Source: Octopus sinensis (Eukaryota). Taken from it: 64,000 nucleotides of DNA. The notes under the pieces were generated by a model that did not search any database, had not been told where the DNA came from, and worked only from the letters and a program-made list of their open reading frames with translations. Position numbers and translations under genes: made by a program. Below are positions 2,831-62,170 of the stretch, piece after piece. The stretch covers positions 98,828,001 through 98,892,000 of the forward strand of contig NC_043001.1 in assembly GCF_006345805.1 (NCBI RefSeq), written 5' to 3'. Position 1 is the first letter of the stretch. The number at the start of each line of letters is the position of its first letter.

Positions 2831-3470
2831 GGCCTACATACCTTTCTCCACTTGTGAAGACCCATTGAGACAAGTGAAAATCAAAATCAAATCAAAATCA
2901 AAATCAAACCAAATAAAATCAGATATCAGAAAGCAGATCCAAAATCGAAGTTGATCAACATCAATGGAAATTGCAGCTGTGGTTAAGCGAACCATCCGAT
3001 TGTGGCCGTTGCCAGCGCTGCCCCGACTGGCCTCCGTGCCGGTGGCACGTAAAAGCACCATCCGTTCGTGTCCGTTGCCAGCCTCGCCTGGCCCCCGTGC
3101 CGGTGGCACGTAGCACCATCCGTTCGTGTCCGTTGCCAGCCTCGCCTGGCCCCCGTGCCGGTGGCACGTAGCACCATCCGTTCATGGCCGTTGCCAGCCT
3201 CGCCTGGCCCCCGTGCCGGTGGCACGTAAAAGCACCATCCGTTCGTGGCCGTTTGCCAGCACCATCTGGCACCTGTGCGGGTGGCACGTAAAAAGCACCC
3301 ACTACACTCACGGAGTGGTTGGCGTTAGGAAGGGCATCCAGCCGTAGAAACACTGCCAGATCAGACTGGGCTTGATGCAGCCTTCTGGCTTCACAGACCC
3401 CAGTTGAACCGTCCAACCCATGCTAGCATGGAAAGCGGATGCTAAATGATGATGATGATGATGATGATGA
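2830..3470 (+). repeat. RTE 3' UTR with (AAATC)n, ~58-62 bp GGTGGCACGTA minisatellite and (GAT)n tail
   Basis: About four tandem units at 3030-3240. The same tail recurs at 20500-20830(+), 52452-53070(+), 60361-60890(-) and 13640-13800(-). Confidence 0.85.
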
Positions 3471-4086: not shown

Positions 4087-4999
4087 AGAGGGCCATATGG
4101 CCCTGGATAAAAAGATTGTTTGAAGTGGTGCACATATTTTATTTATTAAGAAAAAGGAGATAGTCAGAATTTTGGATAATTATTTACTAAGCACTTTCAT
4201 CCCATTTCAGAAATTCATCAGGAATGATTTTTTTAACGAAAATTTATGTCTTTTATATATGTGTGAGTTAGTTGAAATAATCAGGAGCTGAATTGGGAAG
4301 AGAATGTTCTTCGTTATTTTGAATCTATATGTGTGTATATAAGTATGTGTGTGAGGGAAATTTTTGGAGGCTTGGTTAGAGGTAGAAAGAAAGAATGGGG
4401 TCTTTTTCTGAGATTGTTGAAATTGCATTATATTCATTGGTCTGTTATCATGCTACCCAACTGTAGAAAAGGGACTGTTCAAGATTTTCGTTTTTTTTTT
4501 CTTTTTTGTCAGTTGTGAGGTTATCCACTTGTAGAAAATAGACTCTGTCAAAAGTGTTTTGGAAGGTAATTAAAAATGAATGTGTGTTTGAGTATATGTG
4601 TGTGAAAGAGAGTGTGTGTGTGTGTTGTATGTTGGTTGCTGACGTGAATTTTTCCAGTTACTTTAGTAAGTCATCATCCTCATCATCATCATTTAATGTC
4701 TGCCTTCAATGCTGGGTTGGATGGTTTGACAGGAACTGGCCAGGTAGAAGATTACACCAGGCTTCTGTGTCTGTTTTGGCATGGTTTTCATGGCTGGAAG
4801 CCCTTCCTAACACCAACCACTCCATGAGAATATTTTAACAAGGATTTCCCATGTACCTTTTACTTGTTTCAGCCATTCAATGGCGGTCATGCTGGAGCAT
4901 GTACATGAAGGGTTTTAGTTGAACAAATCAACCCCAGAACTTATTCTTTTTTATTCGTTTAGTTTAGTAAGAATTTTTTGATAAAATGCAATTCCATTG

Positions 5000-14693: not shown

Positions 14694-14985
14694 CACGTGA
14701 CCGACCAGACAATCAGATGTTGTTACACATCGCTGGTCACAATGCGTTCGCATGACGCCACCCCGCTGGCTAAGCGAGCAGGCCAACAGAAGAAAGAGTG
14801 GGAGAAAGAGTGGTGAAAGAGTACAGCAGGGATCACCACCCCCTGTCGGAGCCTCGTGGAGCTTTTAGGTGTTTTCGCTCAATAAACACACACAACGCCC
14901 GGTCTGGGAATCGAAACCGCGATCCTGCGACCGCGAGTCCGCTGCCCTAACCACTAGGCCATTGCGCCTCCACATATATATATAT

Positions 14986-19410: not shown

Positions 19411-22036
19411 ATCTCTGTCTCAGTTACATTTGAGCACTTCTCTTTTTTTGCAGTCCTATAAACCCTTTGTTTCCATAAAAAGGAGACAGAAATTATTTCT
19501 TGTCGTATACATATATATATATATGTAAAAGGGCACCATTCGAGCGTGATCGTTACCAACGTCGCCTTACTGGCACCTGTGCCAGTGGCATGTGTAAAAA
19601 GGGGTGGGGAAGGGTATCTTTTTTTCTTCGCAAATGTAAATAAACCCAATCTGTTTCTTAAACGAGGGACATATTCATACAGCACGGAATGTTTTCACCC
19701 CAAATAGACTCCAGCGATTGGTTAAAATTGCTGAAATGCTCGATTTTAAAGTGGAAATATCTTACGAACTACAGAATTTTCTCAATAAAGCCAAGAAAAA
19801 ATGATGTTTTATAAACACATTCTACCAGTATACGAAGTTTAAAAGTGTTTAGTTAACTAGAAATTGTGTTGACATGTGCCGTTCAAAAGGAAAAGATCCA
19901 AAATACATATAAAAAAATAAGTAATAAAAGTAAAACACATCTATATACACATATGCACATACACACACACATCTCTATATGCGCATACCCGCATGTCTAT
20001 ATACGCACGCACACACACAAAGGTTCATACACACATGTAGAAGAAAAAACGGCTAAAGGCAAAATAGAGGAAAATGGGCAAAAAAATGTGTAAAAACGAC
20101 AAAGACTAAAACACATCTATATACACACATACTCGCATGTCCACGTACAAGCTTTTTATCTCTCTATACTTTTTACTTATATTTCTTTATATTTTTTATA
20201 TATCCATTGCTAAGAGCATTTTTAAGCCAGCCCGTCAAGTTCAACCTTCGCATATTCCCGGTGCACCCGCCCTTGCCCACCCCCACCACCAATACCGGAT
20301 ATCTCTATATTTTTGCTCCATCTATACCGGATGTCGCTTCTCCCACCACCATTATAGGTGTCTACTCTTCGAACCCCCTCTTCAATACGCTATTTCACCA
20401 TGCATTACCCCTCTCGTGATATCCTACGTTCTACTTGTCTAGAACCTGTCATCGTTTCTCCGAACACCCCTCCCCACTGGTGCTCCCCTATATTTCTGCA
20501 CCCTCCCCCCACATAAAAAGCACCATCCGAACGTGGCCGATGCCAGCACCGCCCCGACTGGCTTTTGTGCAGGTGGCACATAAAAAGCACCAACTGACCG
20601 TGGCCGATGCCAGACCCCTCTGGCACCTGTGCAGGTGGCACGTAAAAAGCACCCACTACACTCGTGGAGTGGTTGGCGTTAGGAAGGGCATCCAGCTGTA
20701 GAAACACTGCCAGACCAGACTGGAGCCTGGGGCAGCCCCTGGCTCCCCAGACCCCGGTCGAAACCGTCCAACCCGTGCTAGCGCGGAAAACGGACGTTAA
20801 ACGATGATGATGATGATGATGATGATGATAATGTTTCAGCTGATATACCTTCCAGCCTTCATCATGTGTCTTGGGGAAATATCGAAACTGGGTTCTATTT
20901 TTCAACGTGAGTGGTGGCAGTAGCAGCAGCAGCAGCATCTTCATCATCGCTGTCATCGTCATGCAGGTCACTGCCTGGAATCGAACTCAGAATCTTGGGG
21001 TTAGTAGCCTACGCTCTTAACCACTACACCATATGCCCGAGGAGTGCAATTGTGGAGTGAATTTTAGGGCTTATAAATCTAATATTCTCCTATCCTTCCT
21101 TAATACTAGTTCCCATATGCCATTCATAAATTGGTGATAAGGTGTATATGAGGACATACAAAACTGAAAAGTAGAACTGGGAAGAGGGTAAAATTACCAA
21201 ATACATAGGTAAAATGATGTATTGGGTAAAAAGTAGAAAAGGCATACAAAAGAGTCTCAAGAACTAACTGAAAAAGAGATTCGTGGAGAGTGAACCAAAG
21301 AAGCTGAAGGAACCAATAGAATAGTTATACGATACGTTCCAAATAACAATGCCACTGCAGGTGATTGAACCCAGGCATTCAAGTGAAAGGAAAAGAAAAC
21401 ATACAGCGGTCCTGAAAATATATGCCATGAGAAAAAACTATTAAATTGCACAAAAAAAAATCTCAAAAAAGGGAGGTGAACTGAATAAAAAAAATTATTG
21501 CTAAATAAAATGAGACTGCTAAAGAAAAACTTAAAAGGGAAGAGGTTGTAGGGAATCAGTAATAATGGGACATTCCTCCCACATGACAAATGGAATGAAC
21601 CAGTCACTATAAGTAAGGTGATATCAGCTGGTGTCGAGAGAGTACGTAGAGTATAAGAGTACGTGTAGACTGTGTTGATAGTTGTGTCTGTGTGGATATA
21701 GTAATTATACTGTGATACTGAGTGGATGTTATAATGATTCAAACTTTTGAGGACAATAACACTGTACGACTGGGAGTTGTACAGTGCCAGATAGAAACAT
21801 CCTATCAGCAACTTCAGAATATAACAATATCTGTCAGAGCAACAACCGTCATCAAAAGACAGATACATCAGTGGCAAAAGAATGCTTTATAGCATATATA
21901 TATATATATATATATATGTCCCACCCATGCCAGTATGGAAGGTGAACGTTAAACGATGATGATGATGATGATAATGATGATGATACACACACACACACAC
22001 ACACTCAGACTGGACCAAAAGTCATATTTATGTATA

Positions 22037-26971: not shown

Positions 26972-28379
<1,408 letters not shown>

Positions 28380-34970: not shown

Positions 34971-36449
34971 TCACAGTTCCTCTGTCCATTGAGACGTACA
35001 GCGCGCCTTTGGTGGCTTGACCCAAACTTCCTCCCCTATTTTCACGCGAATGGGTCCCTTCTCTTCCTCGTGACCCTCCAGCGCTTTGCTCGGGTGCCTC
35101 CATTCATATTTGAACACAGCTCTCTGCGGCACAGATTCCTCAGCTTGTCCGGATCGGGGAGACAAGTTGTACCAAAAAACTGCTTCAAGCGACGAAATGT
35201 GCCCTCTTTCCGCTATGGCCTTGACTGTCCGATGGTGCCTCTCCACAATCCCGTTACCGCTCGGCCTATATGCTGCTCTGAACAAGCGTCGCACATTCCA
35301 CCAATCAAGCATAACCCTCAATGCTTCCGAACGAAACGCCGCCCCGTTGTCCATCAGTAGTTCTTCCACGGGACCTCTCTCTAAAAATATCCCGTTCAGG
35401 ATCTGCGCGATCTCGTCAGCAATGCCCGATCTCAACTCCCTCCAAATGGCCAGCCGGCCCGGCCTGCAGTCGACCATGGAGAGGTACATTCGCTGACGGT
35501 AGTGTGTCACATCCACAGCTAGCCTTTTCCAGTTCTGCTCCACGGAAAGGCTTCCCTGTTCATGCCCACACAGAGCAGGCTCGATGGACTGACACCTGTC
35601 GCAGCTCCCGACCACCTTCCGGATGCTTCTCCTAGTGACGTCAGCATCAATTTTCTTCGCCAGATACAGTGTCCTGTCCACACCCAGGTGATGCATAGCA
35701 TGCAGTTTCTTCAGTTCAGAGTCATCCAACCGACACGCCGCAGCTATCCCTTTCTGGGCCTCCTCCGGTTCTTCCAACCACGCTCTTTTCACCCTGGTCA
35801 GTACGTCCGCCCTGTTTTTCTCCGAAGGCATGAAAACCACGTTCAGCTTCAGTCCAAACATGGCGATCAATTCACCTAGAACTCCTAGACGGCACTTCAC
35901 TAACATCTCTGCAGCACTTTTCGTCCACACTCTCCTTTCACCGGTGATCACCGATCCTACCCAGCTAAGCACAGTGGCCAAATCCGTCTGGATTTCAATC
36001 GTGCGCAGCCCCCATTTCAAGGCCAAGTTCACCCCTTTCAGCACCGCGTCTAATTCGGCGACATTGATGTGGTTGAAATCATCTGTTTTCCAAAGCCAGG
36101 CCGCGTCCTCCACCGCAGCACCTTCGATTGCCAACACCACCCCTATCGCTATACTGCTAGCATCACACCAGACGGTCCCGCATTCCGTCTTGGGCACGTA
36201 CCAGTTCCCCCTGACCGGGTCTTCCGCTCTCGTCCTCTCTAGGATTTCCTGCATCATCGCCACCGTCCTTTCTCCCACCTTGTCGCCCCACCTCTCCCCT
36301 TCTGCTTGTATCTTGGTGTAACTACACGCCGTGCGCAGCCATCCAGCGATCGGGTAGTGACCGACCAACTTCCCACACACCGAGAACAGCTCTCTCCTGC
36401 TGACGCTGGAACTCAGCTCTGGGATTTCATTTCCTCTCTGGAACACCAA
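34971..36449 (-). CDS. RNase H + integrase part of pol (disrupted)
   Basis: WCDASS (RNase H); HAMHHLGV...CDRC (HHCC); VDVTH, MDNG, NGIVERHHRTVK (DDE). In-frame TGA at 36468-36470; frameshifted tail continues in 34810..35103. Confidence 0.9.
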   Translation of the reverse strand: MVFQRGNEIPELSSSVSRRELFSVCGKLVGHYPIAGWLRTACSYTKIQAEGERWGDKVGERTVAMMQEILERTRAEDPVRGNWYVPKTECGTVWCDASSIAIGVVLAIEGAAVEDAAWLWKTDDFNHINVAELDAVLKGVNLALKWGLRTIEIQTDLATVLSWVGSVITGERRVWTKSAAEMLVKCRLGVLGELIAMFGLKLNVVFMPSEKNRADVLTRVKRAWLEEPEEAQKGIAAACRLDDSELKKLHAMHHLGVDRTLYLAKKIDADVTRRSIRKVVGSCDRCQSIEPALCGHEQGSLSVEQNWKRLAVDVTHYRQRMYLSMVDCRPGRLAIWRELRSGIADEIAQILNGIFLERGPVEELLMDNGAAFRSEALRVMLDWWNVRRLFRAAYRPSGNGIVERHHRTVKAIAERGHISSLEAVFWYNLSPRSGQAEESVPQRAVFKYEWRHPSKALEGHEEEKGPIRVKIGEEVWVKPPKARCTSQWTEEL

Positions 36450-36467
36450 TTCACCCGATCCATCTCT

Positions 36468-37110
36468 TCACAGCTTCAGCCCCAACGCAGCTCCCCCTTC
36501 AATCGACTCTGGTGGCTTGGCAATCAGTCCGAACTTCTCCAGATGTCTAACTACCTTGTCAGCTGGCACTACAGTTTCGTCCACCAAAATGTCGTCAATG
36601 TAGGAGCTGGTGGCCTTTCTAATCTTGCCGTCTTTCCCTAGGACGGACCTAAGCACTGCCGCCATGATCTTCGGAGCGGAATTCAGCCCGAAACCCAGAC
36701 TGGTTAAACAGTACGTCCGGCCCTTGTATCGCACCAGCTGATATTGCCACAGTCTGTCGCTCACATGGAGCTGCAAGTATGCCGATCTCAAGTCGACAAT
36801 CGTCGCTGCCTCGGTCGACTGTCTCCACTTACATAACGCCTCGCCACAAACGTCTGTCGCCTCACCTCCCGTGTGACACGATATGTGCTGGTTTAGCTCC
36901 CTGAAGTCCAGCACCGGTCTGACTTTTCCCTTCGTAGGCTGCACCACCGCCATCAGGGGTAGCACTCCGCCCACTACCTCCTCCTTCCAAGAGACAAGGA
37001 CCCTTTCATCGATCCACCTCTCCACCTCATCTTCAAACTCGACCCTGGTGTGGCCTTTCAGGGTATGCTGGTAACAGCTCACCCTGTTTTCCAGCGTCGG
37101 GGGCTCGCCT
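36468..37110 (-). CDS. Reverse transcriptase part of pol (disrupted)
   Basis: KVRPVLDFRELN, VDLRSAYLQL, LGFGLNSAP, YIDDILV. One-base frameshift relative to the protease near 37108. Confidence 0.9.
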
Positions 37111-37642
37111 TCCATCGCCACTCTATCGTCCACCGCTGACCATCGAACGCCGCCTGAAAGTCTTTGTCCTCGATGGTGTAAGCGGCGCAGTCCCTCGCAG
37201 GGCTCTGCTCTCTCTGGCAATCCTGACTCGCAGTGCATGACGCCCCCACGCTTCCGAACGTGACCTCATTTCCCACAACACTGACGCCACCGAGGCAGTT
37301 GATGGCGTCCATCCCCATCACCACATCAACTCCATCAAAGCGTTCGGCCACAATTGCCTGCAGCCTTAGTGTCGCGTCGCGCACCACTATCTCTACCTTG
37401 CTGCTGCCTCTGCAACGGATTTCGCTGCCGTCGACTGCCCGGACACTACTCACCCCGTTCCATTCCTTCGTCACCCTTGAAGTCACAAGGGTGGTCGTAC
37501 AGCCCGTATCCACGAGGGCCTTGAACGTCTTCCCCTCAGCCTCCACGTCAATCAATGGCAGCGTCTCCAATAGCGCCTCTACTCGTTTGCGGGGAAAGTT
37601 CAAGAGGCAGCAACTTCCCCGCGGTCGTTTCCCTGGTCGCAA
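37079..37642 (-). CDS. Aspartic protease
   Basis: ALVDTGCTTTLV active site, VVMGMD flap. Reading frame is -1 relative to gag. Confidence 0.9.
   Translation of the reverse strand: MRPGKRPRGSCCLLNFPRKRVEALLETLPLIDVEAEGKTFKALVDTGCTTTLVTSRVTKEWNGVSSVRAVDGSEIRCRGSSKVEIVVRDATLRLQAIVAERFDGVDVVMGMDAINCLGGVSVVGNEVTFGSVGASCTASQDCQREQSPARDCAAYTIEDKDFQAAFDGQRWTIEWRWKASPRRWKTG
37589..37633 (-). promoter_or_regulatory. -1 programmed ribosomal frameshift signal (gag/pro)
   Basis: G_GGA_AAC heptamer in gag frame (37633-37627), 4-nt spacer, then stem GCGGGGAAG / CUUUCCCCGC. Confidence 0.85.
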
Positions 37643-38343
37643 TCACGGGCAATGTGCCCTGTCTGCCTGCATTGATAGCAAACAGGCCCCGGCTGCGTAC
37701 AGTCCCGCGCCATGTGCGGTCCCTGGCATCTAAAACACCGTCCTGAGAACATCCGCTCTCGTTGCATGGTAAGCTTCTGTACGTCTTTCTCGGGACGTCG
37801 TCTGTCTTTACGCGCCTCCGTCACCGCCATCGCTATCGCCTTCTGCCCAGAGTGTCTCGTCAACACGCGAGCCTGAGCCACAAGTTCGCTCAGCGGCATC
37901 TTTTTAATCCCAGGCAGTCGTTGTAGGTGAATCCCTACATTGTCAGGGAACCCATTCACAAACGCCAGCCGGGCTGCTCTCTCCAGCCCTTCTCCCGCAA
38001 ACCCAGCCAGAGTCGCTAACCTTCTAACTTCTGATGCATAGTCATCCGCTTGGCCTCCCGTCCACCTGATTGCACCTAGCTTAGCAAAAGCTGTGTATTC
38101 GCATTCCGTGTAGGCATCCCGCAAGCGTCGCTCTATGTTCTCCTCGCTGAGCCGTTCCTCTTCATCCATCCCTAGGTATAGCGTTAAGGCGCTCCCTTCT
38201 AAATACAGCACCATAAGACTCCACACATCGCTTATACCTTGCAGTCTTGCCACCAGCCTGATTTTGCGAATCCAGGCCACTACATCGCCTTCGCCATTAA
38301 AAGGTCTGACGACATCGCTGGCGATCCTAATTTTTGCAGACAT
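37600..38343 (-). CDS. Gag with two zinc knuckles
   Basis: CFRCQGPHMARDC and CYQCRQTGHIARDC; intact 247-aa ORF. Confidence 0.92.
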   Translation of the reverse strand: MSAKIRIASDVVRPFNGEGDVVAWIRKIRLVARLQGISDVWSLMVLYLEGSALTLYLGMDEEERLSEENIERRLRDAYTECEYTAFAKLGAIRWTGGQADDYASEVRRLATLAGFAGEGLERAARLAFVNGFPDNVGIHLQRLPGIKKMPLSELVAQARVLTRHSGQKAIAMAVTEARKDRRRPEKDVQKLTMQRERMFSGRCFRCQGPHMARDCTQPGPVCYQCRQTGHIARDCDQGNDRGEVAAS

Positions 38344-40328: not shown

Positions 40329-40727
40329 TCATGTTAAATTCTTGATCACAAGCCTACAGACCCACACTCGACCACTGTCAGAAATTACAGCATATCTGGA
40401 CTCATGAGAGAATATGACAGTGTCCCAAAATGCTAGTGGCCTCTCCACCATCTCACCGGCCCAATCTTTTCTCCACTTGATATTGGCTGGTTGAAGAAGT
40501 GGCTTCCTTCTTGTTGCTCTGCCATAGTAGCCTAGTTTGTGGAAATACTTCACAGCAGTTCTGGGAATGACATCAACTTGTTCTGCTGTCAGAGGCCTTG
40601 CAATGAGGATTTTCTTCCATACTTCACTTAACAAAGTGAAGGGCCCTGTCAGAGGACCCTGAGGTGAGATGACATGTATTCCTAGGTGAGATGACATGTA
40701 CTCCTTCCCCTTTCTGATGAATTGCAC
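40329..40727 (-). mobile_element. Tc1-like transposase fragment
   Basis: KLGYYGRATRRKPLL..NIKWRKDWA..WDTVIFSHESRY..GRVWV. A possible TIR end CCATACTTCTGGCCACTG|TA lies at ~42185-42204. Confidence 0.75.
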
Positions 40728-43231
40728 ATCATTCTATTAACTGTAGAAAGTGGGATCCCAAGGTTTTCTGAAGTCCACCTTCAGGTTGATCCACAATACA
40801 GCCTCATGGAAATTCAGACAATTTCAAGGCATGATTAAACAGTCACATATAGAACCTAAAGCATAAAAATATCAATAAATAAAAAATATAAACCTTTTCA
40901 AGTTAAGATAAACATAAAACGATGTTTTATGGGGTGTCTATTTTCTTCTGTCATGTCTGTGTATATGTATGGAGCACATGGAGCTTTTTAGCCATGGTAA
41001 GGGCAACTTATCTAGGAGAAGGAAAGCTCTGATATAAAACCAGTTTTGTGGTTGCTGATTTCCCCTTAGTTGATGTGCACTATCAGCATCTACTTACTCA
41101 TAGGGCAGTCTGGGCTCTGTGGCTTTTGAGCAACCAGACTAGGAGAAGGTCATTCTGATCTCAAATCTACGATCAATTTAGCATCTGACACATGGCACAC
41201 TGTGCACCAGTACAGGTAAATGCTTTTTTTCTTTATGGAGAGAGTGTTCATTGTATTGCACAAGCAATGACCACTATAAACAAAACCATGTGCAGGTAGC
41301 TCAGTAAAATGCTGTCAGCAAATACCACCATCGTGTTTTGATAGTGAGAGTGTACCCTACTCCCCACTAAACAAAAAACCTATGACAATGAAAGGGATAG
41401 CAATGGGAACAGGTGAAGGATGTCACTGGAAGTTCTTCGCTTGAACTTTGCACATAGATGATGAAAGATGGCTGCTTTACACAACATCTGCAGGTAATTG
41501 TGTAATTTGTGTCCTTTCACAACAAAGCAACCCTGTTTAGGATAACACTGCTTTCCTCCTATGGAGGAGGGGGTCAAGAAAATGTGACCCAAAAATTGTT
41601 TACTCGCATTGCTCCTTGTCATTAGGTGCAAATGACTGGACACCCAAACCTGCACCAGAAAATTAAGCAAATTGAAAACAGAAAACTTCTTTATTGCAAC
41701 TTGAAATGTAAGAACTCTTCAGGACTGTAAGAAAAATATAGAACATAGGACCACTTTGGTTGCCCATGTTTTGAAGGAAAAAAACATCAAAGTAGAAGTT
41801 CTCAAAGCTATGAGAGAATTCAGATTTATTAATGATCTGTAGGGACACTGTAATTCGTTGAGTTTGTGGCTGATTAATGGGTTGGATGGGTACTGATGAA
41901 GGAGCAAAAACTGAAATATATAATATATGCCTATTACTGATTTTTCATCTTTGATCTCATTGTTGTTTACATCAGGTGTCTCACATATGAAAACATCACA
42001 ACAAAATCAGTGCTGGCTGTGATTTCTATAAAAAATCTGTAGAGATAACCTTGAAGATGTTCAAAACAATGGGAATAAATATGCTTCACATTTGACAGAG
42101 TAATCTGAATGCTAAAGAGTTAAACAGACAGCATTTAGGGCAAATAGAAACATAATTTTTAACATCATTACAATATTCAGGCCACCATACTTCTGGCCAC
42201 TGTATATATTTCTAGTGACTATAGTACCAAAATGTACAGCTTTTATGAAAATTTGTCACAATACCAAATGAACAACAATGTTCCTATTGCAAATAATCAT
42301 TGTCAACTGTCAGTGAGTCCTGTGTTTAATTGCTTCATAGGGTCTTTCAAGCAATTATTTCAAGCAATTATTCCATCTATTCACCTGATTAAGAACCTTA
42401 GACAAAACTGTACTTCAGTGTAACTTAATGAAGATCATTGAGTTGACTTTGCTGACCCCAATGCTGAAGACATTGCTTGACTCCTTGTTGCTGCTTGAAT
42501 CAGCATCAATTTCATGTACTTTCTCAAATTGTTACCTTGAAGACCAGCAGACAAATGTAACATATCAAAAGCAGGAGACTTATCCATATTATGGGTATAA
42601 TCATGTGACCTTTTCTGACATGCATCCGCTGCCAGGTTGGGTGGTGCTTGATGCCATGGAATAAAATAAACAAAGTTTAGATCAGTTCAAAAATGTTTGA
42701 GGCATAATTAGCCTGTAAGACAGCATTTTCACTGTGATTTGCCATGAGGAGAAATTTTTGCTTTAGGCAGCCCCCCCATATATCTTGTTCCAAACTGGCA
42801 GCAGATGCATGAGGTAATATCTGCAGATTTTTAAAAGAAAGTGAAGTCTTCCAATCATTTTGGAGTTGGCTTGCTGGGTATCTTATACTGAAGACAGCTA
42901 AGAAGATAGAAATGCATCCATAGGGTTCACTCTGAACTGACTTTGGTGTTTCTAACACCTTTTACCAAAAGTGAGAATTTTTTTCCATGGCAAACCGTAT
43001 TGAAAATGCCTATTTCTCAAACATATGTGAACTGATCTAAACTTTGTTTATTTTACATCAAGGCTTCAAGCAACACCCATATATAATAAACAATAAGTCA
43101 ACTGAGATTTAAACTATGCAGTGAAAAGCAGAGCTATAAAGCCAACTGGTGAAAGTGAAGGACATATTTCAGTGTTATTAGACCTCCATAGTAAAGCATA
43201 TTCTACTCAGTTGACAAGAATAAGTGTAATC

Positions 43232-45196: not shown

Positions 45197-46418
45197 CACA
45201 CAAACACATACATACACACCCAACACATGATAGGTTTCTTTCAGTTTCTATCTACCAAGAAGCTAGACAGTGGGACTGAACCCAAAACCATGCCTTGCTT
45301 GCAGACAAGCTGGTGACACCATTCTTTGTACTTCCTGGAAGGTATCCCACACATACATACAAAATCTACACACACACACACACATCATCAGACCTTGTGC
45401 AGCCTCCTGGCTTGCCAGTCCTCAGTCAGAGTGTCTAACCCATGCCAGCATGGAAAATGATCATTAAACATTGATGATGATGATGTATGTATGTATATAA
45501 GCAAATCAAAAACAAGTGAAAAAGATGTACGCAGTGAATGTATTAGGCAAAGAATAGTCTGAGAAAAGCATGTGTGTGGTTACATGGCTGAAGTGACGTA
45601 TGTGCGTGGCTGTATGGTTGAGAAGTTCATTTCCCAGCCATATGGATTTGGGTTCAATCCTACTGCATAGCTCCTTGGTCAAGTGTTTTCTGTTATAGCC
45701 CTGAGCCGACCAAAGCCTTGTGAGTGGATTTGGTAAACAGAAACTGAAAGAAACATGTCATCTCTCCATCTGTCTGTCTGTCTGTCTGTCTCTCTCATTG
45801 TGTTTTCTTGTCTTGACATCATGTGATTGTTGTAAATGGATGTCATTCATTTCCAATATTCTGCAAAAACATGCTTGACCATAGAGATATATTATTGCCA
45901 ATAATATGCATTCCTAATATCTAGGCATAAAAATCTGAATAAAAAAACAATGTATATCGTACATGAATAAATATGGTATACTTGCATCTCAGTAACCCAA
46001 TCAGTTATATTGCTTGGACACACTGTAAAAACAATTATAACTAATCTCTAAATTAAGTAGAAGGCTACACATTTGAGAGATGGATAAAGACAATCAAATA
46101 GACTCACCTCTCCCTCGGTACTCTCCCAGTATTTATTTTATCAATACTGGAAGGATGAAAGGACAAAACAACTATAGCAGTATTTGAACTCAGAACATAA
46201 AGATATGCAACTGAACGCTGCAAGGCATTTTGTACAATACTGTAACTATTCATTCCAACTAGCACTCTGTAGGGACACTGTATAATTGGTGGGGGTTTGT
46301 ATTAATTTTATTTATGCTTCTTAATTTTAAAAATCATTGAATTAAAATAATTAAAAGATTACCATTTCCTATGTTTGTCTTTGCAGAAACAAACATCAAA
46401 ATAAAGAACATTGTAACC

Positions 46419-47637
46419 ATGAAGCTTTTACTGATAGTTTTTATATGCATTATGTCAATATGCATCGTTAATACTACTTGTCCGGAATCATGCCAGTGCA
46501 ACAAAGAACAAACAGAAGTTTCATGTGAGAGACAATCTCTAACATCAGTCCCTAAATCATTGCCGACAACTACAGAATCTCTCAAATTGGCTTATAATTT
46601 ACTACGAGAAATTACAGCAGAGTCTTTCAAAAATTTAGTTAAACTGAAAAAACTGGTTTTAACATCAAACAAAATTTCAGTTATCAGAAAAAATAGTTTT
46701 AAATACCAATCCAAACTGGTCTCTCTTTACTTGATCAACAATATCATCCATACCATTGAAAATGGTTCTTTTGTTGGGGCCATTTCTTTAGCTAGTATTT
46801 ATCTGAGTTCAAATCAACTAAAAGATGTTCCATGTCTTTATGGTTTAATCTCATTGAAACATCTACTCATAAATACCAATCAAATTTCAGAAGTATTCTT
46901 TCCTGCTGAATATAGGCAAATAAAAAATCTCACTTATATAAATCTTTCTAATAACAAAATAAACCGTCTTACTGTTAATTCTCTTATAAATTTAAATGAG
47001 TCAAATATAAAGAGGATCTCATTTTCAAGAAATCAAATCACAAATATTGAACCAGAAACATTTCGTGTCCTAAGTAACATAAATTCTTTGAATCTTGCAG
47101 AAAACCCTTTCACAGCAGATGTCCTTAAAAACTCTCTCTATGCAATGAGAAATTTTAACCTTCGCTCTTTGGATCTTTCTGGATTAAAAAAGATAAATGT
47201 TCTTGCAGATAACATATTTGAAGCATTACAAAATACTTCCCTTCAAACACTAATCTTAAGTCATAGTAACATCTCACGTGTCAGCAGCAACACATTCAAA
47301 CTATTAGATTCTCTTGAAGTTCTGAAGCTAGATTTTTGTCAAATTGCCAGTTTAGAAGAATCTACATTCACAAATTTGACTCATTTAAGAAGGCTCTTTC
47401 TGAATGGCAATTACATATCTAAGCTAACAGCAGTTTTCCCATCGAAACTACTTTATTTGTACCTGAACAGTAATAAGATTCAGAAAGTCCCAAGCAAAGT
47501 TTTTGATGAGCTGTTTCATTTGATAGAACTTCACCTACAGTACAATAAAATTGTACAGTTCGACAAAGACGCATTTATAGGCCTGGAGAATCTCAAGACT
47601 TTGAAGTTACAACACAATCATATTAATGTTATTCCAG
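46419..47637 (+). CDS. Toll-like receptor, coding exon 1 (signal peptide, LRRNT, ~15 LRRs)
   Basis: ACCATG start, MKLLLIVFICIMSICIVNT signal peptide, CPESCQC..VSC cap, LxxLxLxxN repeats. Donor CAG|GTGAGT at 47637/47638, phase 1. Confidence 0.93.
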
Positions 47638-48923
47638 GTGAGTAATAAAAGTTATCTTTTAAAGCAGACAAATAGCATTATGCTTTATTGAGTCTCAAGA
47701 AAGAGACACAGTTGATTTTGATGGTGGTGTGCCACCCTCCTGGCTGAGGAGTAAAAACAAAATGCCTCAGTAGATATAGTGCTGAACAACTAATCCTTAT
47801 GTTAAAGTATTCTTCAAGCACTTGTGTATTTAGATACAATGCTTGTTTATTTAGGGAGTGCATTTATGTATTTAGGGAATTATACTTGTCTATTTAGGGA
47901 TTTTCTTGTCAATTTAGCACTTAATTTTATATGCCTCGGTATTCAGTATCGTCTGAGAATGCTACTTATCAGAAACTATCTTTTCATCTACTTGGGGCCT
48001 GAAATATGGAGGGCTGCACCATTTAAGCTCTATGAACAGGCTGTATCAAAGGCATACTGCTATAAAAAGTGACAAGAGTAAGAAAGTTAGATGATTTCCT
48101 ATAAAAACTTTAATTAGAGGTATTAGTTAGAGTTTGTGAGGAGAGACTACTGCAATGGGTGTAATTTTCTAGATGAAGAAAAACCCTGTTATTTAATATT
48201 ATAGCATCAGGTCAGTCATGACTGAGCAGAACAATGACTGTTGATGTTCCAGCTTTGAGCAACCTTTCCTTTTAGTGGATATTTCTAGTGCTACATTTGC
48301 CAATGCTTCCTTCTTTTTTAAGACTGGGGGCTTGGAATTTTGAGGAAAGTATCATGGTTTGTGAATACATTATACATGAGGGAGTAAAAGAAAGTAGTAA
48401 AGTTCCTTCCTGAATCATATAGACTCATAGGGATAGTTTCCATGGCATGAATATATTCCCCACCTAGACAGGACACTAGTCTGTTGCAGGATTACTCATT
48501 TTTACCAGCCGAGTGGACTGGAGCAAAATGAAATGAAGTGTTTTGCTCAAGAACACAACGTGTGAGTTGGTCCAGATATCAAAACCACGATTTTACAATT
48601 ATGAGTCCAACACCCTAACCACTATGCCACATGCCTCCACTATGCATGAGGGAAGTAGAACTAAAATCAAGATAAAATAAGTTATTGAAGGGTAAGATAC
48701 ATATGTTTTGGGTTTATAGAACAACTTATTCTTACATCAATGCATAATTGATATATGAAAGAAGTAAGGTGTGAGGAAAAGGTGCCGCCATCGGTCAAGG
48801 CTGCTGCACAACTAATGTGCAATGCCTGGAACTGGGTATGAGGATAATGAAAACATGTACCTGACATTATGATTATAGAACGTTGTGATGTATGATGCAA
48901 TGTTTATCTATTATTTCTTGCAG

Positions 48924-50215
48924 GTGGTTTATTTTCTACATTGGCTGGTCTGTCAGATTTACAACTTGGTTCCAATGACATAACTACTATACCTGAAGAA
49001 ATTTTCATCAGACTAAAATCCCTGAGTTTTCTGGATCTATCCAATAATCATATTTCCAAGATGCCCAAAAGTTTTTCAAAAGAGTTAACTCGAATAAGAA
49101 AATTATATTTAGATTCTAACAAACTTGGGAAATTCTTATCTACTGACAAAAAGGGCTTCCTGCTGAGTGGTCTTAAAAATTTGGAAAGAATTGATTTATC
49201 TTATAATGAAATTCAAGGCCATTTGTCTAAGAAAATCTTTCAAAACAATAAACATCTGAAATATATCTATTTCAGGGGAAATAAAATTACTGGATGGGAA
49301 AACAACACATTTGAGGTAACAAATTTAACACTGATGGAACTTGATGTCAGTAATAACTTCATAATTACTTTTGATAGTGATTCTTTAAAGTATATAAACA
49401 GGAAGAAAAAGTTCAACATTACTTTGAACCCATTTGCATGTGACTGCAATCTTCGTTGGTTCAGGGACTGGTTAAATACTACAACAGTAGATATTGTAGA
49501 CAAAAACGACTTGATGTGCAACAGTCCTCCAGATTGGCAGGGCAAGAAATTACTTGATTTCAGTCGGTCAAAGATAGATTGTACTGACTATACGCTTTAC
49601 TATATCTTAGCTGGTGGAGGTGGAGGTTTTCTCTTAACTGTTGTCATAGTTATATTTGCATACACTAAACGTTGGTACATCAAATTTAAGATGTTTAAAC
49701 TTTATCAGTATGTACAGAAATCAGGCAATGAAAAAGAGTATGAAGCTATACCTGGAGATGACATGTATTTCGATGGGTACATCAGTTACTCTGACAAAGA
49801 TAGTGAATGGGTTGAAAAGTATTTGATGCACACGTTTGATAATGGAGAAAATGGAGAAAATAAGAACAATGGAAACTTTAAACTTTGCTTTCGAAACAGG
49901 GACTTTGCTTATGGAAAATATATTATTGGAATGATAGAAAGTTCTCTGGCTGTGAGTAAGAAAATGATAGTGGTTCTAACACCATATTATAAAAAGGACA
50001 AGAGATGTGAATTTGAATTGCAACTTGGTATTATGAAGCTTAATATAAGGAATGTGATGCCTATTGTGCTCAAAAACTTACAACCAAATCAGATTCCCAA
50101 TAGTCTGAAAGAAATCTTTGAAACAAATAAATTTATTGAATGGGACAATAATGAGTATGCTACAAATTTTATAAAACGTAAACTGGAAAATTTCCTTAAT
50201 GAACAGAACCTCTAA
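48924..50215 (+). CDS. Toll-like receptor, coding exon 2 (~7 LRRs, LRRCT, TM, TIR)
   Basis: Acceptor TTTCTTGCAG|GT, phase 1 and in frame. NPFACDCNLRWF..CNSP..C cap, TM YYILAGGGGGFLLTVVIVIFAY, TIR FDGYISYS..LCFRNRDF..RCEFEL. Spliced product 836 aa. Confidence 0.95.
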
Positions 50216-52400: not shown

Positions 52401-52451
52401 ATACATACTTGTGTGTATGTGTGTATATATATATTTATATATATATATATT

Positions 52452-53068
52452 AGGTCTCACCAAGGAAATGACTAGAGACCGAGACCTATGGAAGTATGCT
52501 GTGCGTGAGAAGACCCGGCAAGACTAGTGAGGCCATAACCCGTGGCCTCTACCTGGGACGTAGTCAGTCCACCTGTGCATACCTTCCTTCTTGTGACACT
52601 TGTGAAGACCTGTTGAGGCAAGTGAAAATCAAACCAAATCAAAATAGATGAACATCAATGGAATTTGTATCTTTGTGGTACCAGTGCCGGTGGCACATAA
52701 GAAAACCATCCGAACGTGGCCATAGCCAGTACCGCATTGACTGGCCTCCGTGCTGTTGGCACGTAACAAACACCATCCGATCGTGGCCGTTCGCCAGCCT
52801 CGTCTGGCACCTGTGTCGGTGGCACATAAAAAACACCATCCGAGCGTGGCTGTCTGCCAGCCTCGTCTGGCACCTGTGTCGGTGGCACATAAAAACACCC
52901 ACTACACTCTCGGAGTGGTTGGTGTTAGGAAGGGCATCCAGCTGTAGAAACACTGCCAGATCTGACTGGCCTGGTGCAGCCTTCGGGCTCCCCAGACCCC
53001 AGTTGAACCGTCCAACCCATGCTAGCATGGAAAGCGGACGTTAAACGATGATGATGATGATGATGATG

Positions 53069-53639: not shown

Positions 53640-54393
53640 ACAGTGTGTTTGGTGTTAGAAGGGGGCATCCAGCCATAAAAACCCTGCCAAAACAGATACT
53701 GGAGCCTGGTGCAGTCTTCTGCCTAGCCATCTCCTGTCAAATCATCCAACCCACGTTAGCATGGAAAGCAGATGTTAAGCAAATTTGTTCATGTGTGATG
53801 AACCAGTTACAAACACTAATGTCTTTTACTGTCCTCTTGTTAACTTCAGCTATACTGTCCCATTTTTTTTAATTGAATTCCTCCCTTCCTCTAGTTTTTC
53901 TGCTCCTTTCTCTTCCAAATCTTTACCTCTTCCTCTTTCTTCTTTATCCTTCTCCCTTATACTGATGCTTATCTTCATTTCCTGCCCCCATACTTGTACT
54001 ATTCCTTCAGTGTTTTGCCTATCAATGGGCCTAATGAGAAAGCCTATCAATAACGAACCTACTAATGGCTACTGGAAACAGCTGTAAATCAAATTTACTA
54101 CAATAAAGAAAAATATGTAATGACCATTATTTATGCCTTGTCTTTTATATCATTCTGTGTAAAATCAGTATAACTGGAGCACAAACATGGATTTACAATA
54201 TACAATAGTGATGAACTATAACCTCAGACCCTGCCACATGATCACACAGGGTTCTTTACTAATCTCAGCAATATTGTTAGCTTAATGTACTAACAGAGTT
54301 TATAAAGTATTTTGCCCAAAATGATAATCCCCCCACAAACAATATATATATATATTATTTCAGAGGCAAGGAAAAGTAAATGAACAAAAAAAA

Positions 54394-56090: not shown

Positions 56091-56689
56091 CTACAATTAT
56101 TACTTAAGTCTGGAAATACCCTGTTCTTCAATTCAGCTAGGGAATTCACCATGATAGCAATATGAGCCAAGCTGATATCACCATTCCTATCAAATGGTAC
56201 TTTCCCATTTCCTAATTGGAGGAGCCAGGTTGAAAATTGTTCTGCACATTGGTCCCCATGTAATAACGCTCACACATTAGTATTGAAGGAGAATTTTTGT
56301 ATTTTATTCCATAGGTGCAAAGACTTAATGCATGCTTTTATTTCATCAAATCTTTGTCTTGGAATGTCTGGTAATGTCTCTCTGAAGTCTTCTGATGAAA
56401 CTCATGTAACTCCCTCCATAGATTTATTGTTGCCTCTGATGTCCTGTAAGATCTTACCAAGAGCTTCCACTGCACCTCTATGTGACATGGTGCATTCATT
56501 CCAAATGATAAGGTGGCATTGGCACAACACTTTTAGTGAACTGAATCTTTTCTTATGTTACAAAATGGACTGTCATTTGTGACCTGGTTTAACAGTAATT
56601 TAGAAGCAGAATGGGCTGTTCGTCCTCCTGAGAGGAATAGTGGGAGAAAAGCCAAACAATCCTACAGCAACTGCAATTCTTTTTTCTTG

Positions 56690-56790
56690 CCTTACCTTGG
56701 AGAGAAGCAATGTTGTTACAAATGTTTTACCTGTGCCATCAGGAGCATCAAAAAGGAAAATTCCTCTGCTTTTTTCTGGTGATTGTGGAA
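56690..56790 (-). mobile_element. Helitron PIF1 Walker A fragment
   Basis: IFLFDAPDGTGKTFVTTLLLSKVRQEKRIAVAV. Confidence 0.75.
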
Positions 56791-57699
56791 CACCGTATGC
56801 ACACACATAAACACAGACACATATACATACAGTATCAAACATGAGATGAAATGGACATGTGTGTGTGAGTGATAGAGAGCACGAATGAAGGGGTATGTTG
56901 TCATGTATACATAAATAAATAAGCATACATCTTTTTTGTATGTATGTGTGCATGTGAGAGAGCGAATGCCACTTAGACATCACTCACTCTCTCTCTCTCT
57001 ATCTTATGCACACATACATGCAAAAAAGATGTATGCTTATGTATTCATGTAAGTACACATACATGACAACACATCCCTTCACTCTCTCTCTCTCACACAC
57101 ACACATACATAAATGTATACCAACATACATACAAAAACACGTGTGTGTGTGTGTGTGACTGACTACAAATACAAAGAGCTGAACATCACACACAAAAAGT
57201 AAATAAATTTTACGGACATTAATGAAGTGTGCAGGTTCAAGTGAAAGAATGCCCATATTTTTTTTTGGGACGACTCGTGTTGAATTGCAAATTTTAATGT
57301 GATATTTGTGTAATAACGAAATCAAACTTGGAGTGTGTGTGTGAGTGAGAAAGAGAGGGGGAGAGAACATTGCAAACAATGAATGAAATAAGCATAAAAT
57401 GAAAAAAATTGTCTCAATAATAATACATTAAACATATCTTGTACAAAATATTTGAATTTGTGAACTTAGTAAATATTTGTTTCAGTAATTTATTGTAGTT
57501 GTTTCGAAAGAGTAAATTAAAATGGAAAATTTCACAGTTGCTATGTCAAAACTGATGATCCTATTACGTATCCAAGTTTAAATTATTCATGCATCCCAAG
57601 TTTTCTCAGGAAAAGCGAAAATACATACACGTCTTGATTGTTGGCCTATTTTATGTGTGAGGAAGTTTGACAGCACTGCTCTTATCTGTACCATATTGA

Positions 57700-59100: not shown

Positions 59101-59611
59101 TTATTTTTTTTTACATATATAATTATAAAGATTAGCAAGGATATCCAGCGTTGCTCAGGATTAAAATGGCATAGTTTGTGTATAATATATTACAGTTATG
59201 TTGAAACAGGTGGTATGGGAAAGTGCAGCATTGACAACAAAACATTTAAGGAGTTTCTAAATCTCTCGTAGAGAGGTGTACGGTGGTGGAGCGATATAAT
59301 GGTTGTATACTGTCAATCTAACAAGAACGTGACAGTAGGGGGTACACCACAGGATAAAATGTGTCGAAGCTGTCAGGAGGCGTTCGATGCCTCCTAGGGC
59401 TATATAACGGTGGTGTACCCCCTACTGTCACGTTCTTGTTAGATTGACAGTATACAACCATTATATCGCTCCACCACCGTACACCTCTCTACGAGAGATT
59501 TAGAAACTCAATATTTCTTATTTTGATAATCAGTGAATAGACTTCACTGACTATAGATATATACAAATACAAAGTCGAGACAGATATCGCCAGCTGACCG
59601 GTGTCTGCTAC

Positions 59612-59657
59612 TCTAGGCCGATGAAGGACAATGATCCTGAAACACGGTGTCCCTAGA
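59612..59657 (+). ncRNA. Type I hammerhead ribozyme, copy 1
   Basis: UCUAGG CCGAUGA AGGA-CAAUGA-UCCU GAAA CAC-G-GUG UC^CCUAGA. Cleavage after 59651. Stem I extends through a UAC/U internal loop into CUGC/GCAG, CCGG/CCGG and CCAGCUG/CGGUUGG. Confidence 0.88.
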
Positions 59658-59975
59658 TGCAGTTCCGGCGGTTGGGGGTGTTTGTCTCCCCTTCGGATGT
59701 GTATATAAGGACACAGGATAAAATGTGTCGAAGCTGTCAGGAGGCGTTCGATGCCTCCTAGGGCTATATAACGGTGGTGTACCCCCTACTGTCACGTTCT
59801 TGTTAGATTGACAGTATACAACCATTATATCGCTCCACCACCGTACACCTCTCTACGAGAGATTTAGAAACTCAATATTTCTTATTTTGATAATCAGTGA
59901 ATAGACTTCACTGACTATAGATATATACAAATACGAAGTCGAGACAGATATCGCCAGCTGACCGGTGTCTGCTAC

Positions 59976-60021
59976 TCTAGGCCGATGAAGGACAATGATC
60001 CTGAAACACGGTGTCCCTAGA
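59976..60021 (+). ncRNA. Type I hammerhead ribozyme, copy 2
   Basis: Identical to copy 1, 364 bp downstream. Cleavage after 60015. Confidence 0.88.
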
Positions 60022-60275
60022 TGCAGTTCCGGCGGTTGGGGGTGTTTGTCTCCCCTTCGTATGTGTATATAAGGACACAGGATAAAATGTGTCGAAGCTG
60101 TCAGGAGGCGTTCGATGCCTCCTAGGGCTGTATAACGGTGGTGTACCCCCTACTGTCACGTTCTTGTTAGATTGACAGTATACAACCATTATATCGCTCC
60201 ACCACCATACACCTCTCTACGAGAGATTTAGAAACTCAATATTTCTTATATATATATATATATATATAATGTATG

Positions 60276-60351
<76 letters not shown>

Positions 60352-60360
60352 TGCATATAT

Positions 60361-60890
60361 CATCATCATTTAGCGTCCGCTTTCCATGCTAGCATGGGTT
60401 GGACGGTTCAACTGGGGTCTGGGAAGCCAGAAGGCTGCACCAGGCCCAATCTTATCTGGCAATGTTTCTACGGCTGGATGGCCTTCCTAACGCCAACCAC
60501 TCTGTGAGTGTAGTGGGTGCTTTTTACATGCTAGACGAGGCTGGCAAACGACCACAATCGGATGGTGCTTTTTACGTGCCACTGGCACAGAGGCCAGTCG
60601 AGGCGGCGCTGGCAACGGCCACGTTCGGATGGTTCTCTTACGTGCCACGGGCACTGGTATCACAGCTTGATTTGATTTGATTTTCACTTGCCTCAACAGG
60701 TCTTTGCAAGTAGAGTTTTGTGTCCCAAGAAGGAAAGGTATGAATAAGTGGACTGGCTACATCCCAGGTAGAGGCCACGGGTTATGGTGTCACTTGTCCT
60801 GCCGGGTCTTCTCACGCACAGCATACTTCCAAAGGTCTCGGTCTCTAGTCATTTCTTCGGTGAGACTTAAAGTTCGAAGGTTGTGCTTAT
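60361..60890 (-). mobile_element. RTE 3' UTR insertion
   Basis: Reverse complement of the 2740-3470 family, including the (CAT)n tail. Confidence 0.85.
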
Positions 60891-60899
60891 ATATATATA

Positions 60900-62170
60900 T
60901 TGGGATTTTTTAAATTTAAACTTTTTAAAAGGTTTAATAAAGAAAAAGAAATAACTAATTAATCAATAATATATCCACCCTTGTTGTTTACAACTTCTTC
61001 CCAACGTTCAACAAGATTTTCAATACCTCGTTGGTAGAAATCACCTGATTTCGACTCAAAAAATTGATCCAACCAAGCTCTCAATTCTGCATCAGTATTG
61101 AACGAAACTCCATTCATAGCATTTGAAAGAGATCAAAAGAGGTTGAAATCCGTTGGTGCCAAATCAGGAGGGTACGGTGGGTGTGGCAGCACTTCCCAGC
61201 CATGCGTTTGAATGGCTTCCTTGGTCATATTGGCAATATGAGGGCGGGCATAATCGTGCAGCATAAGAACTCCATGCTGCCGATTAGGTCTTTTCTCTTG
61301 AACAGCCATGTTGAGTCATTCCATCTGTTGAACATAGAGTTCCACGTTGACTGTTTGGTTCCGTTCAAGCAATTCGTAATGAATAATCCCTTCCCAGTCC
61401 CACCATATGCACAACATCGTTTTATGCGGATGAAGATCTTGTTTCATGCGTGGTGTCGCTTGTTTACTGGGGCTAAGCCATTCCTTATGCTGCTTCATAT
61501 TGATGTACAGGCACCATTTTTCTTCGCGAGTAATGATTCAGTAAAGAAATCGCTGCTTGTGTCCACGAGTTGAGTGGTGACAAGCAAGCAAACCAGCAGA
61601 GATTGTGGCTCATTGATTTTGTTGTTGTCACTTAAAGCATGCGGAAACCCAGCTCCATACTTCTGAACCATCATTGAGTGAAGATGCTTCTCTATAGCAG
61701 TGTGGGAGCATTCCATTTTCTATGCCAGTTCCTTTGTCATTTGACGAGAATTTTCATGCAAAAGTTGGTTTAATAGGTCTTCATCAACAACCACTGGACA
61801 GCCAGAACGAGGTGCATCTTTGAGGTCAAAATTTCCCTTTTTGAACTTGGCATACCAATTACAAGCAGTTCTTTCAGCTACAACACCCTCTCCATACACA
61901 ACACAAATGTCACGAGCAGCTTTTGCGGCCTTAGAACCTTGATTAAAAGCAAAAAGAAGGAGGTGTCGAAAATGCTCATTTTTCTTAACTTGACATTCCA
62001 TTTTAATGATGTGAAAATAAACAAAATTTAACTGAAATTAACTACAAAAAGACAAAATAGATTCCAAAATGATTCAAAAAAGGATTCTCGAAAAAAATAG
62101 ATTCCAAAATTTAAAAACGCAATAAATTCCAAAATTTTAAAAAACAGTGGGAACTTGGTTGCCAACCCAA
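60900..62170 (-). mobile_element. Near full-length inactive mariner (second family)
   Basis: MECQVKKNEHFRHLLLFAF..WYAKFKKGNFDLKDAPRSG; MLCIWWDWEGIIHYELL; HDYARPH..PPDLAPTDF. Right end GCCAACCCAA|TA; left TIR reduced to TA|TTGGG. Confidence 0.9.

Follow-up and report, generated by a model that had tools for sequence, protein, structure and literature searches.

A young tandem array in Octopus sinensis as a candidate non-LTR retrozyme with a variant hammerhead core

What kind of element leaves behind a few near-identical, non-coding tandem units, each full copy of which carries a hammerhead-like motif? This question is raised by the locus at 59251-60249 of a stretch of Octopus sinensis DNA (contig NC_043001.1, forward strand, positions 98,828,001 to 98,892,000; hereafter the window, 64 kb, in whose numbering all coordinates are given). 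An earlier note on this DNA had read the locus as a candidate cephalopod retrozyme, a repeat whose RNA cuts itself and circularises. Our analysis makes it reasonably probable that the locus represents one recent insertion of a non-coding retroelement of the animal non-long-terminal-repeat (non-LTR) retrozyme type, a non-autonomous element derived from Penelope-like elements (PLEs). Judged from its sequence, the element probably adds a new member, with a U4C variant of the hammerhead core, to the non-LTR retrozyme class. The class itself has already been described in cnidarians, molluscs, arthropods and amphibians. As defined by Cervera & de la Pena (2020, PMC7229834), animal retrozymes are tandem repeats that encode no protein, are low in GC, have units of 150-450 bp and contain a type I hammerhead. 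They are related to the pseudo-LTRs (pLTRs) of PLEs, and are identified in practice as arrays detected by Tandem Repeats Finder in which two or more successive units carry a hammerhead (Li et al. 2026 preprint).

Architecture of the array and anatomy of the insertion

The array was delineated with Tandem Repeats Finder, and blastn was used to compare the units with one another and with an inverted copy; the repeats were grouped into inverted-repeat families I1-I3 and a direct family D1. Tandem Repeats Finder reported a single array at 59348-60249 with a period of 364, 2.5 copies, 99% matches and no indels. This is the sole long-period array of its kind in the window, and its 364-bp unit falls within the range of the head-to-tail repeats of metazoan non-LTR retrozymes (unit of ~150-450 bp). 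Direct comparison showed that the units differ by exactly four substitutions (59571A/59935G, 59696G/60060T, 59766A/60130G and 59843G/60207A). About 2.5 near-identical 364-bp units with four substitutions had been claimed before, and both methods bear this out. The start of the range, previously given as 59251, had to be moved to 59348, where the array begins; 59251-59350 is an inverted copy of 59410-59509. Because the 2.5 copies are 99% identical and differ by only these four substitutions, the array appears to be young and the insertion recent. The parts of the element are as follows.

59251-59350, minus strand: inverted 5'-truncated unit copy, 100 nt, 100% identical to the reverse complement of 59410-59509
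59348-59350, no strand assigned: CAC microhomology at the junction, with which the inverted copy ends and the direct array begins
59348-59711, plus strand: direct unit 1, 364 bp in the Tandem Repeats Finder register, family D1
59712-60075, plus strand: direct unit 2, 364 bp, two differences from unit 1
60076-60249, plus strand: partial unit 3, 174 bp, two differences from unit 2, ending at the 3' terminus of the element
60238-60249, plus strand: 3' extension AATATTTCTTAT, 12 nt, present on the direct array and absent from the inverted copy by direct comparison
60247-60351, no strand assigned: (TA)27 (60247-60299) and then (CA)26 (60299-60351) microsatellite, abutting the 3' end

The element thus consists of the inverted 5'-truncated copy, followed by 2.5 head-to-tail units and then by (TA)27(CA)26. 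The inverted segment matches the reverse complement of the corresponding segment in units 2 and 3 equally well (I1-I3), and 59251-59347 gave no direct-orientation alignment to the unit. The end of the inverted copy corresponds to 60237 in the unit, and the direct array runs 12 nt beyond this point, to 60249. Ends that lie no more than 12 nt apart in the unit are what a retroelement with a defined 3' end would be expected to show. The 12-nt extension may correspond to a PLE-type "tail". The microsatellite, which is presumed to be the target of insertion, adjoins the element at the 3' end only. The left flank is unique within the window, and on the other side a SINE-like (short interspersed nuclear element-like) repeat, with at least six other copies in the window, follows the microsatellite.

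Insertions of PLEs are marked by 5'-truncation, by partial tandems with an inverted 5'-truncated copy at the 5' end, and by a 30-40-bp extension at one end only; their strong bias to (TA)n or (CA)n microsatellites masks target-site duplications (Craig et al. 2021, PMC8557442). The locus contains a partial tandem preceded by an inverted 5'-truncated copy at its 5' end. Of the other traits in this list, the one-sided extension is shorter here, at 12 nt against 30-40 nt, and a (TA)n/(CA)n tract is found at the 3' end. The common 3' end and the CAC junction would be the expected trace of target-primed reverse transcription with template switching, and an RNA template that was circular or multimeric would fit the presence of more than one unit.

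The inverted copy and the first unit together make up a perfect 100-bp hairpin with a 59-nt loop (59251-59509), and the RNA fold of 59240-59520 has a free energy of -219.3 kcal/mol (z -32.6). A transcript through this hairpin would be a long double-stranded RNA and a possible source of small RNAs. The only strong match in the Rfam searches, to MIR821, reached 46.6 bits against a cutoff of 249 bits and was rejected as an artefact of the 100-bp hairpin.

The unit has no coding capacity. Its longest open reading frame (ORF) is 70 aa and has no homologue, in agreement with the earlier statement that neither transposase nor reverse transcriptase is encoded in it; for the two 70-aa ORFs of the unit, neither the exact protein look-up nor the homologue search gave a match. 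The GC content of 45% is below the 50% limit of retrozymes, and the unit contains no LTR, primer binding site (PBS) or polypurine tract (PPT), as in retrozymes.

The hammerhead motif and the predicted folding of the unit

Each full unit contains a type I hammerhead motif, and several RNA features are predicted around it.

59612-59657, plus strand: type I hammerhead copy 1, predicted cut after C17 at 59651, located by the descriptor scan and by model R1 (see below)
59976-60021, plus strand: type I hammerhead copy 2, identical to copy 1, predicted cut after 60015
59577-59688, plus strand: extended helix I around hammerhead copy 1, found also at 59941-60052; the long helix recurs in the fold of the circular monomer
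59652-60015, plus strand: predicted unit-length RNA, 364 nt, GC 45%, between the predicted cleavage sites
59375-59395, plus strand: internal hairpin AGGAGGC-GUUCGAU-GCCUCCU, repeated at 59739-59759 and 60103-60123

The motif string of each full unit is UCUAGG-CCGAUGA-AGGA(CAAUGA)UCCU-GAAA-CAC(G)GUG-UC^CCUAGA, and the string quoted in the earlier note is indeed present at both places. Helix I (UCUAGG/CCUAGA) has 6 bp. The core consists of C3 C4 G5 A6 U7 G8 A9, later G12 A13 A14, then A15.1...U16.1 and C17. Helix II (AGGA/UCCU) has 4 bp and the 6-nt loop CAAUGA. Helix III, ACA(CGG)UGU, could form either as 3 bp with a 3-nt loop or by pairing between copies. Both copies carry GAAAC and GUC, and the topology is that of type I, with three helices of which helix I is open and helices II and III are capped. 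All core positions other than position 4 match the hammerhead consensus. The description of the motif as a "complete" hammerhead therefore holds for the helices and for these other core positions, and fails at position 4, which is C instead of U.

The significance of the motif was examined with a relaxed type I descriptor, which demanded CNGANGA, a helix II of at least 3 bp, GAAA, a helix III, a UH cleavage dinucleotide and a 6-bp helix I. In the 64 kb, both strands included, this descriptor found two sites only, namely the two hammerhead copies. No canonical CUGANGA hammerhead was detected anywhere in the window by the descriptor scan of both strands, and a minus-strand hammerhead, searched by descriptor, was not found. 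Among 400 dinucleotide-preserving shuffles of the window, no match with a perfect 6-bp helix I appeared, and one appeared with 5/6 pairs. The hammerhead fold is far beyond chance.

The motif was also scored with a covariance model (R1) built from the hammerheads of coral Amil224, mussel Mg353 and axolotl Ax353 and Ax330, with the candidate left out. The input sequences, taken from supplementary Table 2 of PMC7229834, were all cleaved in vitro. With filters off and the whole window as the target, R1 scored both copies at 27.4 bits (E 8.2e-06), and the alignment spans all 44 model positions without non-standard pairs. The next-best R1 match in the window scored 13.4 bits (E 0.15). These same values belong to a solitary hammerhead-like motif at 41887-41933 (plus strand), which has a canonical CUGAUGA...GAAA core and a 6-bp helix I with a helix II of only 2 bp; it lies outside any repeat and is probably due to chance.

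In the predicted fold of 59575-59690 (minimum free energy, MFE, -57.3 kcal/mol; z -6.38), the 6-bp helix I is followed by a UAC/U internal loop and then by 28 further predicted pairs. The UAC/U loop had been noticed earlier, with "about 15" pairs beyond it; the loop is there, and the count of pairs was too low. The UAC/U internal loop and the 6-nt loop 2 would be candidate elements for a loop 1-loop 2 contact. In the lowest-energy fold, C3-C4-G5 pairs with the CGG of the helix III loop and the core is not formed. Helix III in a single copy adds no stability (-6.5 kcal/mol, vs -7.2 kcal/mol without it). When two helix III strands are paired with each other, a free energy of -10.7 kcal/mol is predicted for 4 bp, a G.G mismatch and 4 bp, and the four validated retrozyme ribozymes, at -6.0 to -14.8, bracket this value. 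The suggestion that a near-palindromic stem III might allow two ribozymes to fold as a dimer is thus compatible with the computed pairing energy, with the qualification that the predicted duplex holds the G.G mismatch.

The predicted monomer, 59652-60015, is indeed 364 nt long by descriptor and by counting, with the putative sites after 59651 and 60015, as had been proposed. Folded in silico as a circle, it has an MFE of -136.3 kcal/mol (z -7.4) with 63% of the bases paired; a highly self-paired monomer is a characteristic of retrozymes. The AGGAGGC/GCCUCCU hairpin at 59375-59395, also reported earlier, is present. A B-box-like sequence, CGTTCGATGCC, lies within this T-arm-like hairpin with its 7-bp stem in each unit (59381-59391, 59745-59755 and 60109-60119). 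An origin from RNA polymerase III (Pol III) or tRNA genes was considered and rejected: there is no A box, ARAGORN found no tRNA, and the B-box-like pattern is not above chance (8 matches vs 4.3 expected).

Origin of the element and competence of the ribozyme

All the sequence-level features by which retrozymes are recognized were found at the locus, other than a strict CUGANGA box. The retrozyme reading is the best fit to the data, and the insertion signature of PLEs backs it further than the earlier note had seen. That note nevertheless overstated its case, given the off-consensus core and the lack of an Rfam match.

Several observations weigh against the reading. Both copies depart from the consensus at position 4 of the conserved core, with C in place of U (CCGAUGA vs CUGANGA), and the strict published retrozyme descriptor (CUGANGA) would reject this core box. 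The U4C change "considerably decreases activity in vitro" and is tolerated in a viroid in vivo, according to a passage of PMC3088659. The Infernal/Rfam scoring that had been proposed as a check gave no hammerhead family at any threshold tried: in Rfam 15, none matched at the gathering score, nor at E<=10 on 1301, 131 or 71 nt. This miss is likely to be due in part to C4, to the A-U pair at positions 10.1/11.1 and to a helix III of very few base pairs; no other ribozyme family matched in the four Rfam runs (the whole window at the gathering score, and 1301, 131 and 71 nt). The four substitutions were checked for covariation, and none is compensatory; two of the four break predicted pairs. No target-site duplication was recognizable when the flanks of the element were read, and blastn found no second copy of the unit in the 64-kb window, where a single locus is visible. 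The window has 33 ORFs of 120 aa or longer, and the ten of these that were scanned against Pfam include no PLE reverse transcriptase or endonuclease. Finally, cleavage, the 364-nt circle and PLE-mediated reinsertion are all steps that we infer.

It is worth noting that the repeated structure could have arisen without any retroelement. A local event at the microsatellite, in which replication slippage or fold-back repair duplicated unique DNA in tandem and in inverted orientation, would account for the single locus seen, for the extreme youth of the array, for the fragile (TA)n(CA)n tract next to it and for the microhomology at the inverted junction. The hammerhead would then be fortuitous. We regard this explanation as very unlikely: the fold is far beyond chance, its placement within a 28-bp helix I extension and a rod-like unit is typical of retrozymes, and at most 12 nt of the unit separate the end of the inverted copy from that of the direct one. 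The locus might instead be read as a miniature inverted-repeat transposable element or foldback DNA transposon with 100-bp terminal inverted repeats (59251-59350 and 60138-60237) and internal tandem repeats. The two terminal arms are indeed 99% complementary over 100 nt (I3). The "right terminal inverted repeat", however, recurs in every unit (I1, I2), the arms are not flanked by a target-site duplication, no transposase and no other copies were found in the window, and the inverted 5'-truncated copy of PLEs explains the same geometry. We consider this explanation extremely improbable, and a DNA transposon with terminal inverted repeats was rejected for want of a target-site duplication and because its supposed terminal repeat is internal to every unit. 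Misassembly of a complex repeat, with a wrong copy number or a spurious inverted arm as the result, is likewise highly improbable, because the units can be told apart by four substitutions and have clean junctions; a mistaken copy number would leave the existence of the unit and its ribozyme untouched.

The main rival of the retrozyme reading accepts the same PLE-mobilized origin and holds that this copy, or the whole lineage, is ribozyme-dead through U4C. Its transcripts would stay multimeric, no circular RNA would be made, and the array would have been copied from uncleaved read-through RNA. This is a possible explanation, of which we remain doubtful. The core is CCGAUGA in both units, U4C strongly lowers in vitro activity according to the same passage of PMC3088659, and the Rfam models do not recognize the motif. 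Moreover, the fold of lowest energy lacks the core, its C3-C4-G5 being paired with CGG from the loop of helix III, and the 3' end of the insertion (60237-60249) lies away from the cleavage site, with both ribozyme sites intact in the DNA. A circular template, however, would likewise put the 3' end away from the cleavage site. The remaining core positions and all three helices are intact, and the internal loop of helix I and the 6-nt loop 2 are present, elements that stabilise the tertiary fold of type I hammerheads through contacts of a kind proposed to offset core variants. Tertiary contacts have been suggested to have such an effect (Perreault et al., PMC3088659), and a passage of the same source describes a viroid hammerhead with a natural U4C that keeps its function in vivo (Ambros & Flores 1998, cited in PMC3088659). 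Since both units come from one event, their common C4 says nothing about selection.

If the retrozyme reading is correct, the life cycle of the element may be pictured as follows. A transcript spanning both ribozymes would be cut after 59651 and 60015. The cutting would probably be slow because core position 4 is C and not U, and, since a lone helix III is unstable, it would probably rely on the pairing of this helix between two ribozymes. The 364-nt product would carry 5'-OH and 2',3'-cyclic phosphate ends and would be circularized by a host RtcB-type tRNA ligase. The RNAs of known retrozymes are self-paired linear and circular molecules, the latter circularized most likely by tRNA ligase and not by the ribozyme (PMC7229834). 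The circle, or a multimer, might then serve as the template for a reverse transcriptase that a PLE provides in trans. The tandem-plus-inverted arrangement would result from template switching together with integration at the microsatellite, carried out by the GIY-YIG endonuclease.

A bolder form of this reading, which we put forward tentatively, is that the locus belongs to a living retrozyme family in a lineage without a described one, the cephalopods. C4 would be the norm of the family, and the ribozyme would still cleave, aided by the contact between helix I and loop 2 and by between-copy pairing. Such a family would escape both CUGANGA surveys and Rfam; the locus would be direct structural evidence for PLE integration, and the 100-bp hairpin could yield small RNAs against the family. 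Our literature search found no open paper that describes an octopus or cephalopod retrozyme or hammerhead ribozyme, or that holds this ribozyme sequence. In Octopus vulgaris, 31 Penelope-like families with 336 recent insertions have been reported (PMC13282606), and ribozymes are not mentioned anywhere in that repeat paper. The exact ribozyme 24-mer gave 0 matches in metagenome contigs and 0 in genome contigs, the host genome not being among them. A degenerate ribozyme pattern gave 27 metagenome matches, none of which combines a C-N dinucleotide with the helix I/III context; they look like chance and were set aside.

The locus bears on a wider question. Animal retrozymes have been defined recently, and their link to PLEs rests mainly on co-occurrence and on similarity to pLTRs (Li et al. 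2026 preprint). A fresh insertion with the scars of PLE integration, namely the inverted truncated copy, the template-switch microhomology and the microsatellite target, would add mechanistic support to this link. Surveys based on descriptors and on Rfam would both miss a U4C element. Should the family prove active, perfect cores are over-represented in the catalogue of genomic hammerheads and of repeats that give rise to circular RNA. With a dead ribozyme, the locus would be a young relic of little wider interest.

Surrounding sequence and comparison with known systems

In its content the window is clearly metazoan, and it is very rich in TA, TATG and CA microsatellites. The SINE-like family next to the element (~60359-60900), with 70-84% identity and internal 58-67-bp subrepeats, has related copies near 2719-3456, 20516-20811, 52450-53055, 4682-4828, 45393-45496 and 53640-53778. 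Paired tRNA-type A and B boxes are found at 14907-14961 and 20977-21031, both on the minus strand. Other mobile elements include an LTR retrotransposon spread over several ORFs at 34971-38343 (minus strand), with a gag with zinc knuckle, a reverse transcriptase, an RNase H-like domain and an integrase; a further ORF of this retrotransposon may be the protease. Fragments of Tc1/mariner-type transposases are present at 27267-27680 (plus strand) and 40329-40727 (minus strand), only the second of which has Pfam support (HTH_Tnp_Tc3_2, below the cutoff). The ORF at 56600-56983 (minus strand) has a GTGKT P-loop and resembles, by eye, a fragment of a Pif1/Helitron-type helicase. A Toll-like-receptor-type gene is represented by two plus-strand ORFs ~1.3 kb apart, at 46371-47645 (LRRNT and LRR domains) and 48941-50215 (LRR and TIR domains). 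The best relatives of the latter in the protein collection are only 25-29% identical, and there is no exact record of it.

The layout of the hammerhead resembles that of Sm-alpha of Schistosoma mansoni, the crystallized full-length type I hammerhead, in which a helix I of 6 bp is reportedly followed by a UAC bulge that faces one U. It is also said to have a 4-bp helix II, a 6-nt loop beginning with CAA, a GAAAC segment and a GUC cleavage triplet. The hammerhead of the present element presumably shares this layout, a likeness that we take as a lead and not as a test. Sm-alpha has a canonical CUGAUGA core and resides in a SINE-like element with a Pol III promoter; the present element, in contrast, has a B-box-like sequence only and no A box. 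As in the satellite 2 hammerheads of newt and axolotl, helix III is too short alone and can pair between tandem copies, although the host lineage is different and no sequence relationship exists outside the ribozyme core.

The similarity to PLEs and their pLTRs (PMC8557442; review PMC6155905) lies in the partial tandem, the inverted 5'-truncated copy, the short one-sided extension and the presumed microsatellite target; as in the pLTRs, the hammerhead is inside the repeated part. Unlike PLEs, the element has no ORF for a reverse transcriptase or GIY-YIG endonuclease, its unit is only 364 bp, the hammerhead has the canonical type I layout, and the extension is 12 nt instead of 30-40 nt.

The metazoan non-LTR retrozymes (Acropora Amil224, Mytilus Mg353, axolotl Ax353 and Ax330; PMC7229834) are likewise 150-450-bp tandem units with GC below 50%, non-coding and without LTR, PBS or PPT, with one plus-strand type I hammerhead per unit and a strongly self-paired monomer. 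A short, palindromic or near-palindromic helix III is found both here (ACACGGUGU) and in axolotl Ax353 (ACACGUGU), with strands that are nearly alike; the Ax353 ribozyme cleaves far better as a dimer (PMC7229834). In contrast to these retrozymes, the present element has C4 instead of U4, opens helix II with A-U instead of G-C, extends helix I by 28 further pairs, and would hold a G.G mismatch in a dimeric helix III. It also contains an inverted 5'-truncated copy, which PMC7229834 does not mention. The single core deviation is the same as that of the U4C viroid hammerhead described in a passage of PMC3088659; that hammerhead belongs to an infectious plant RNA, whereas the one described here is part of a genomic repeat.

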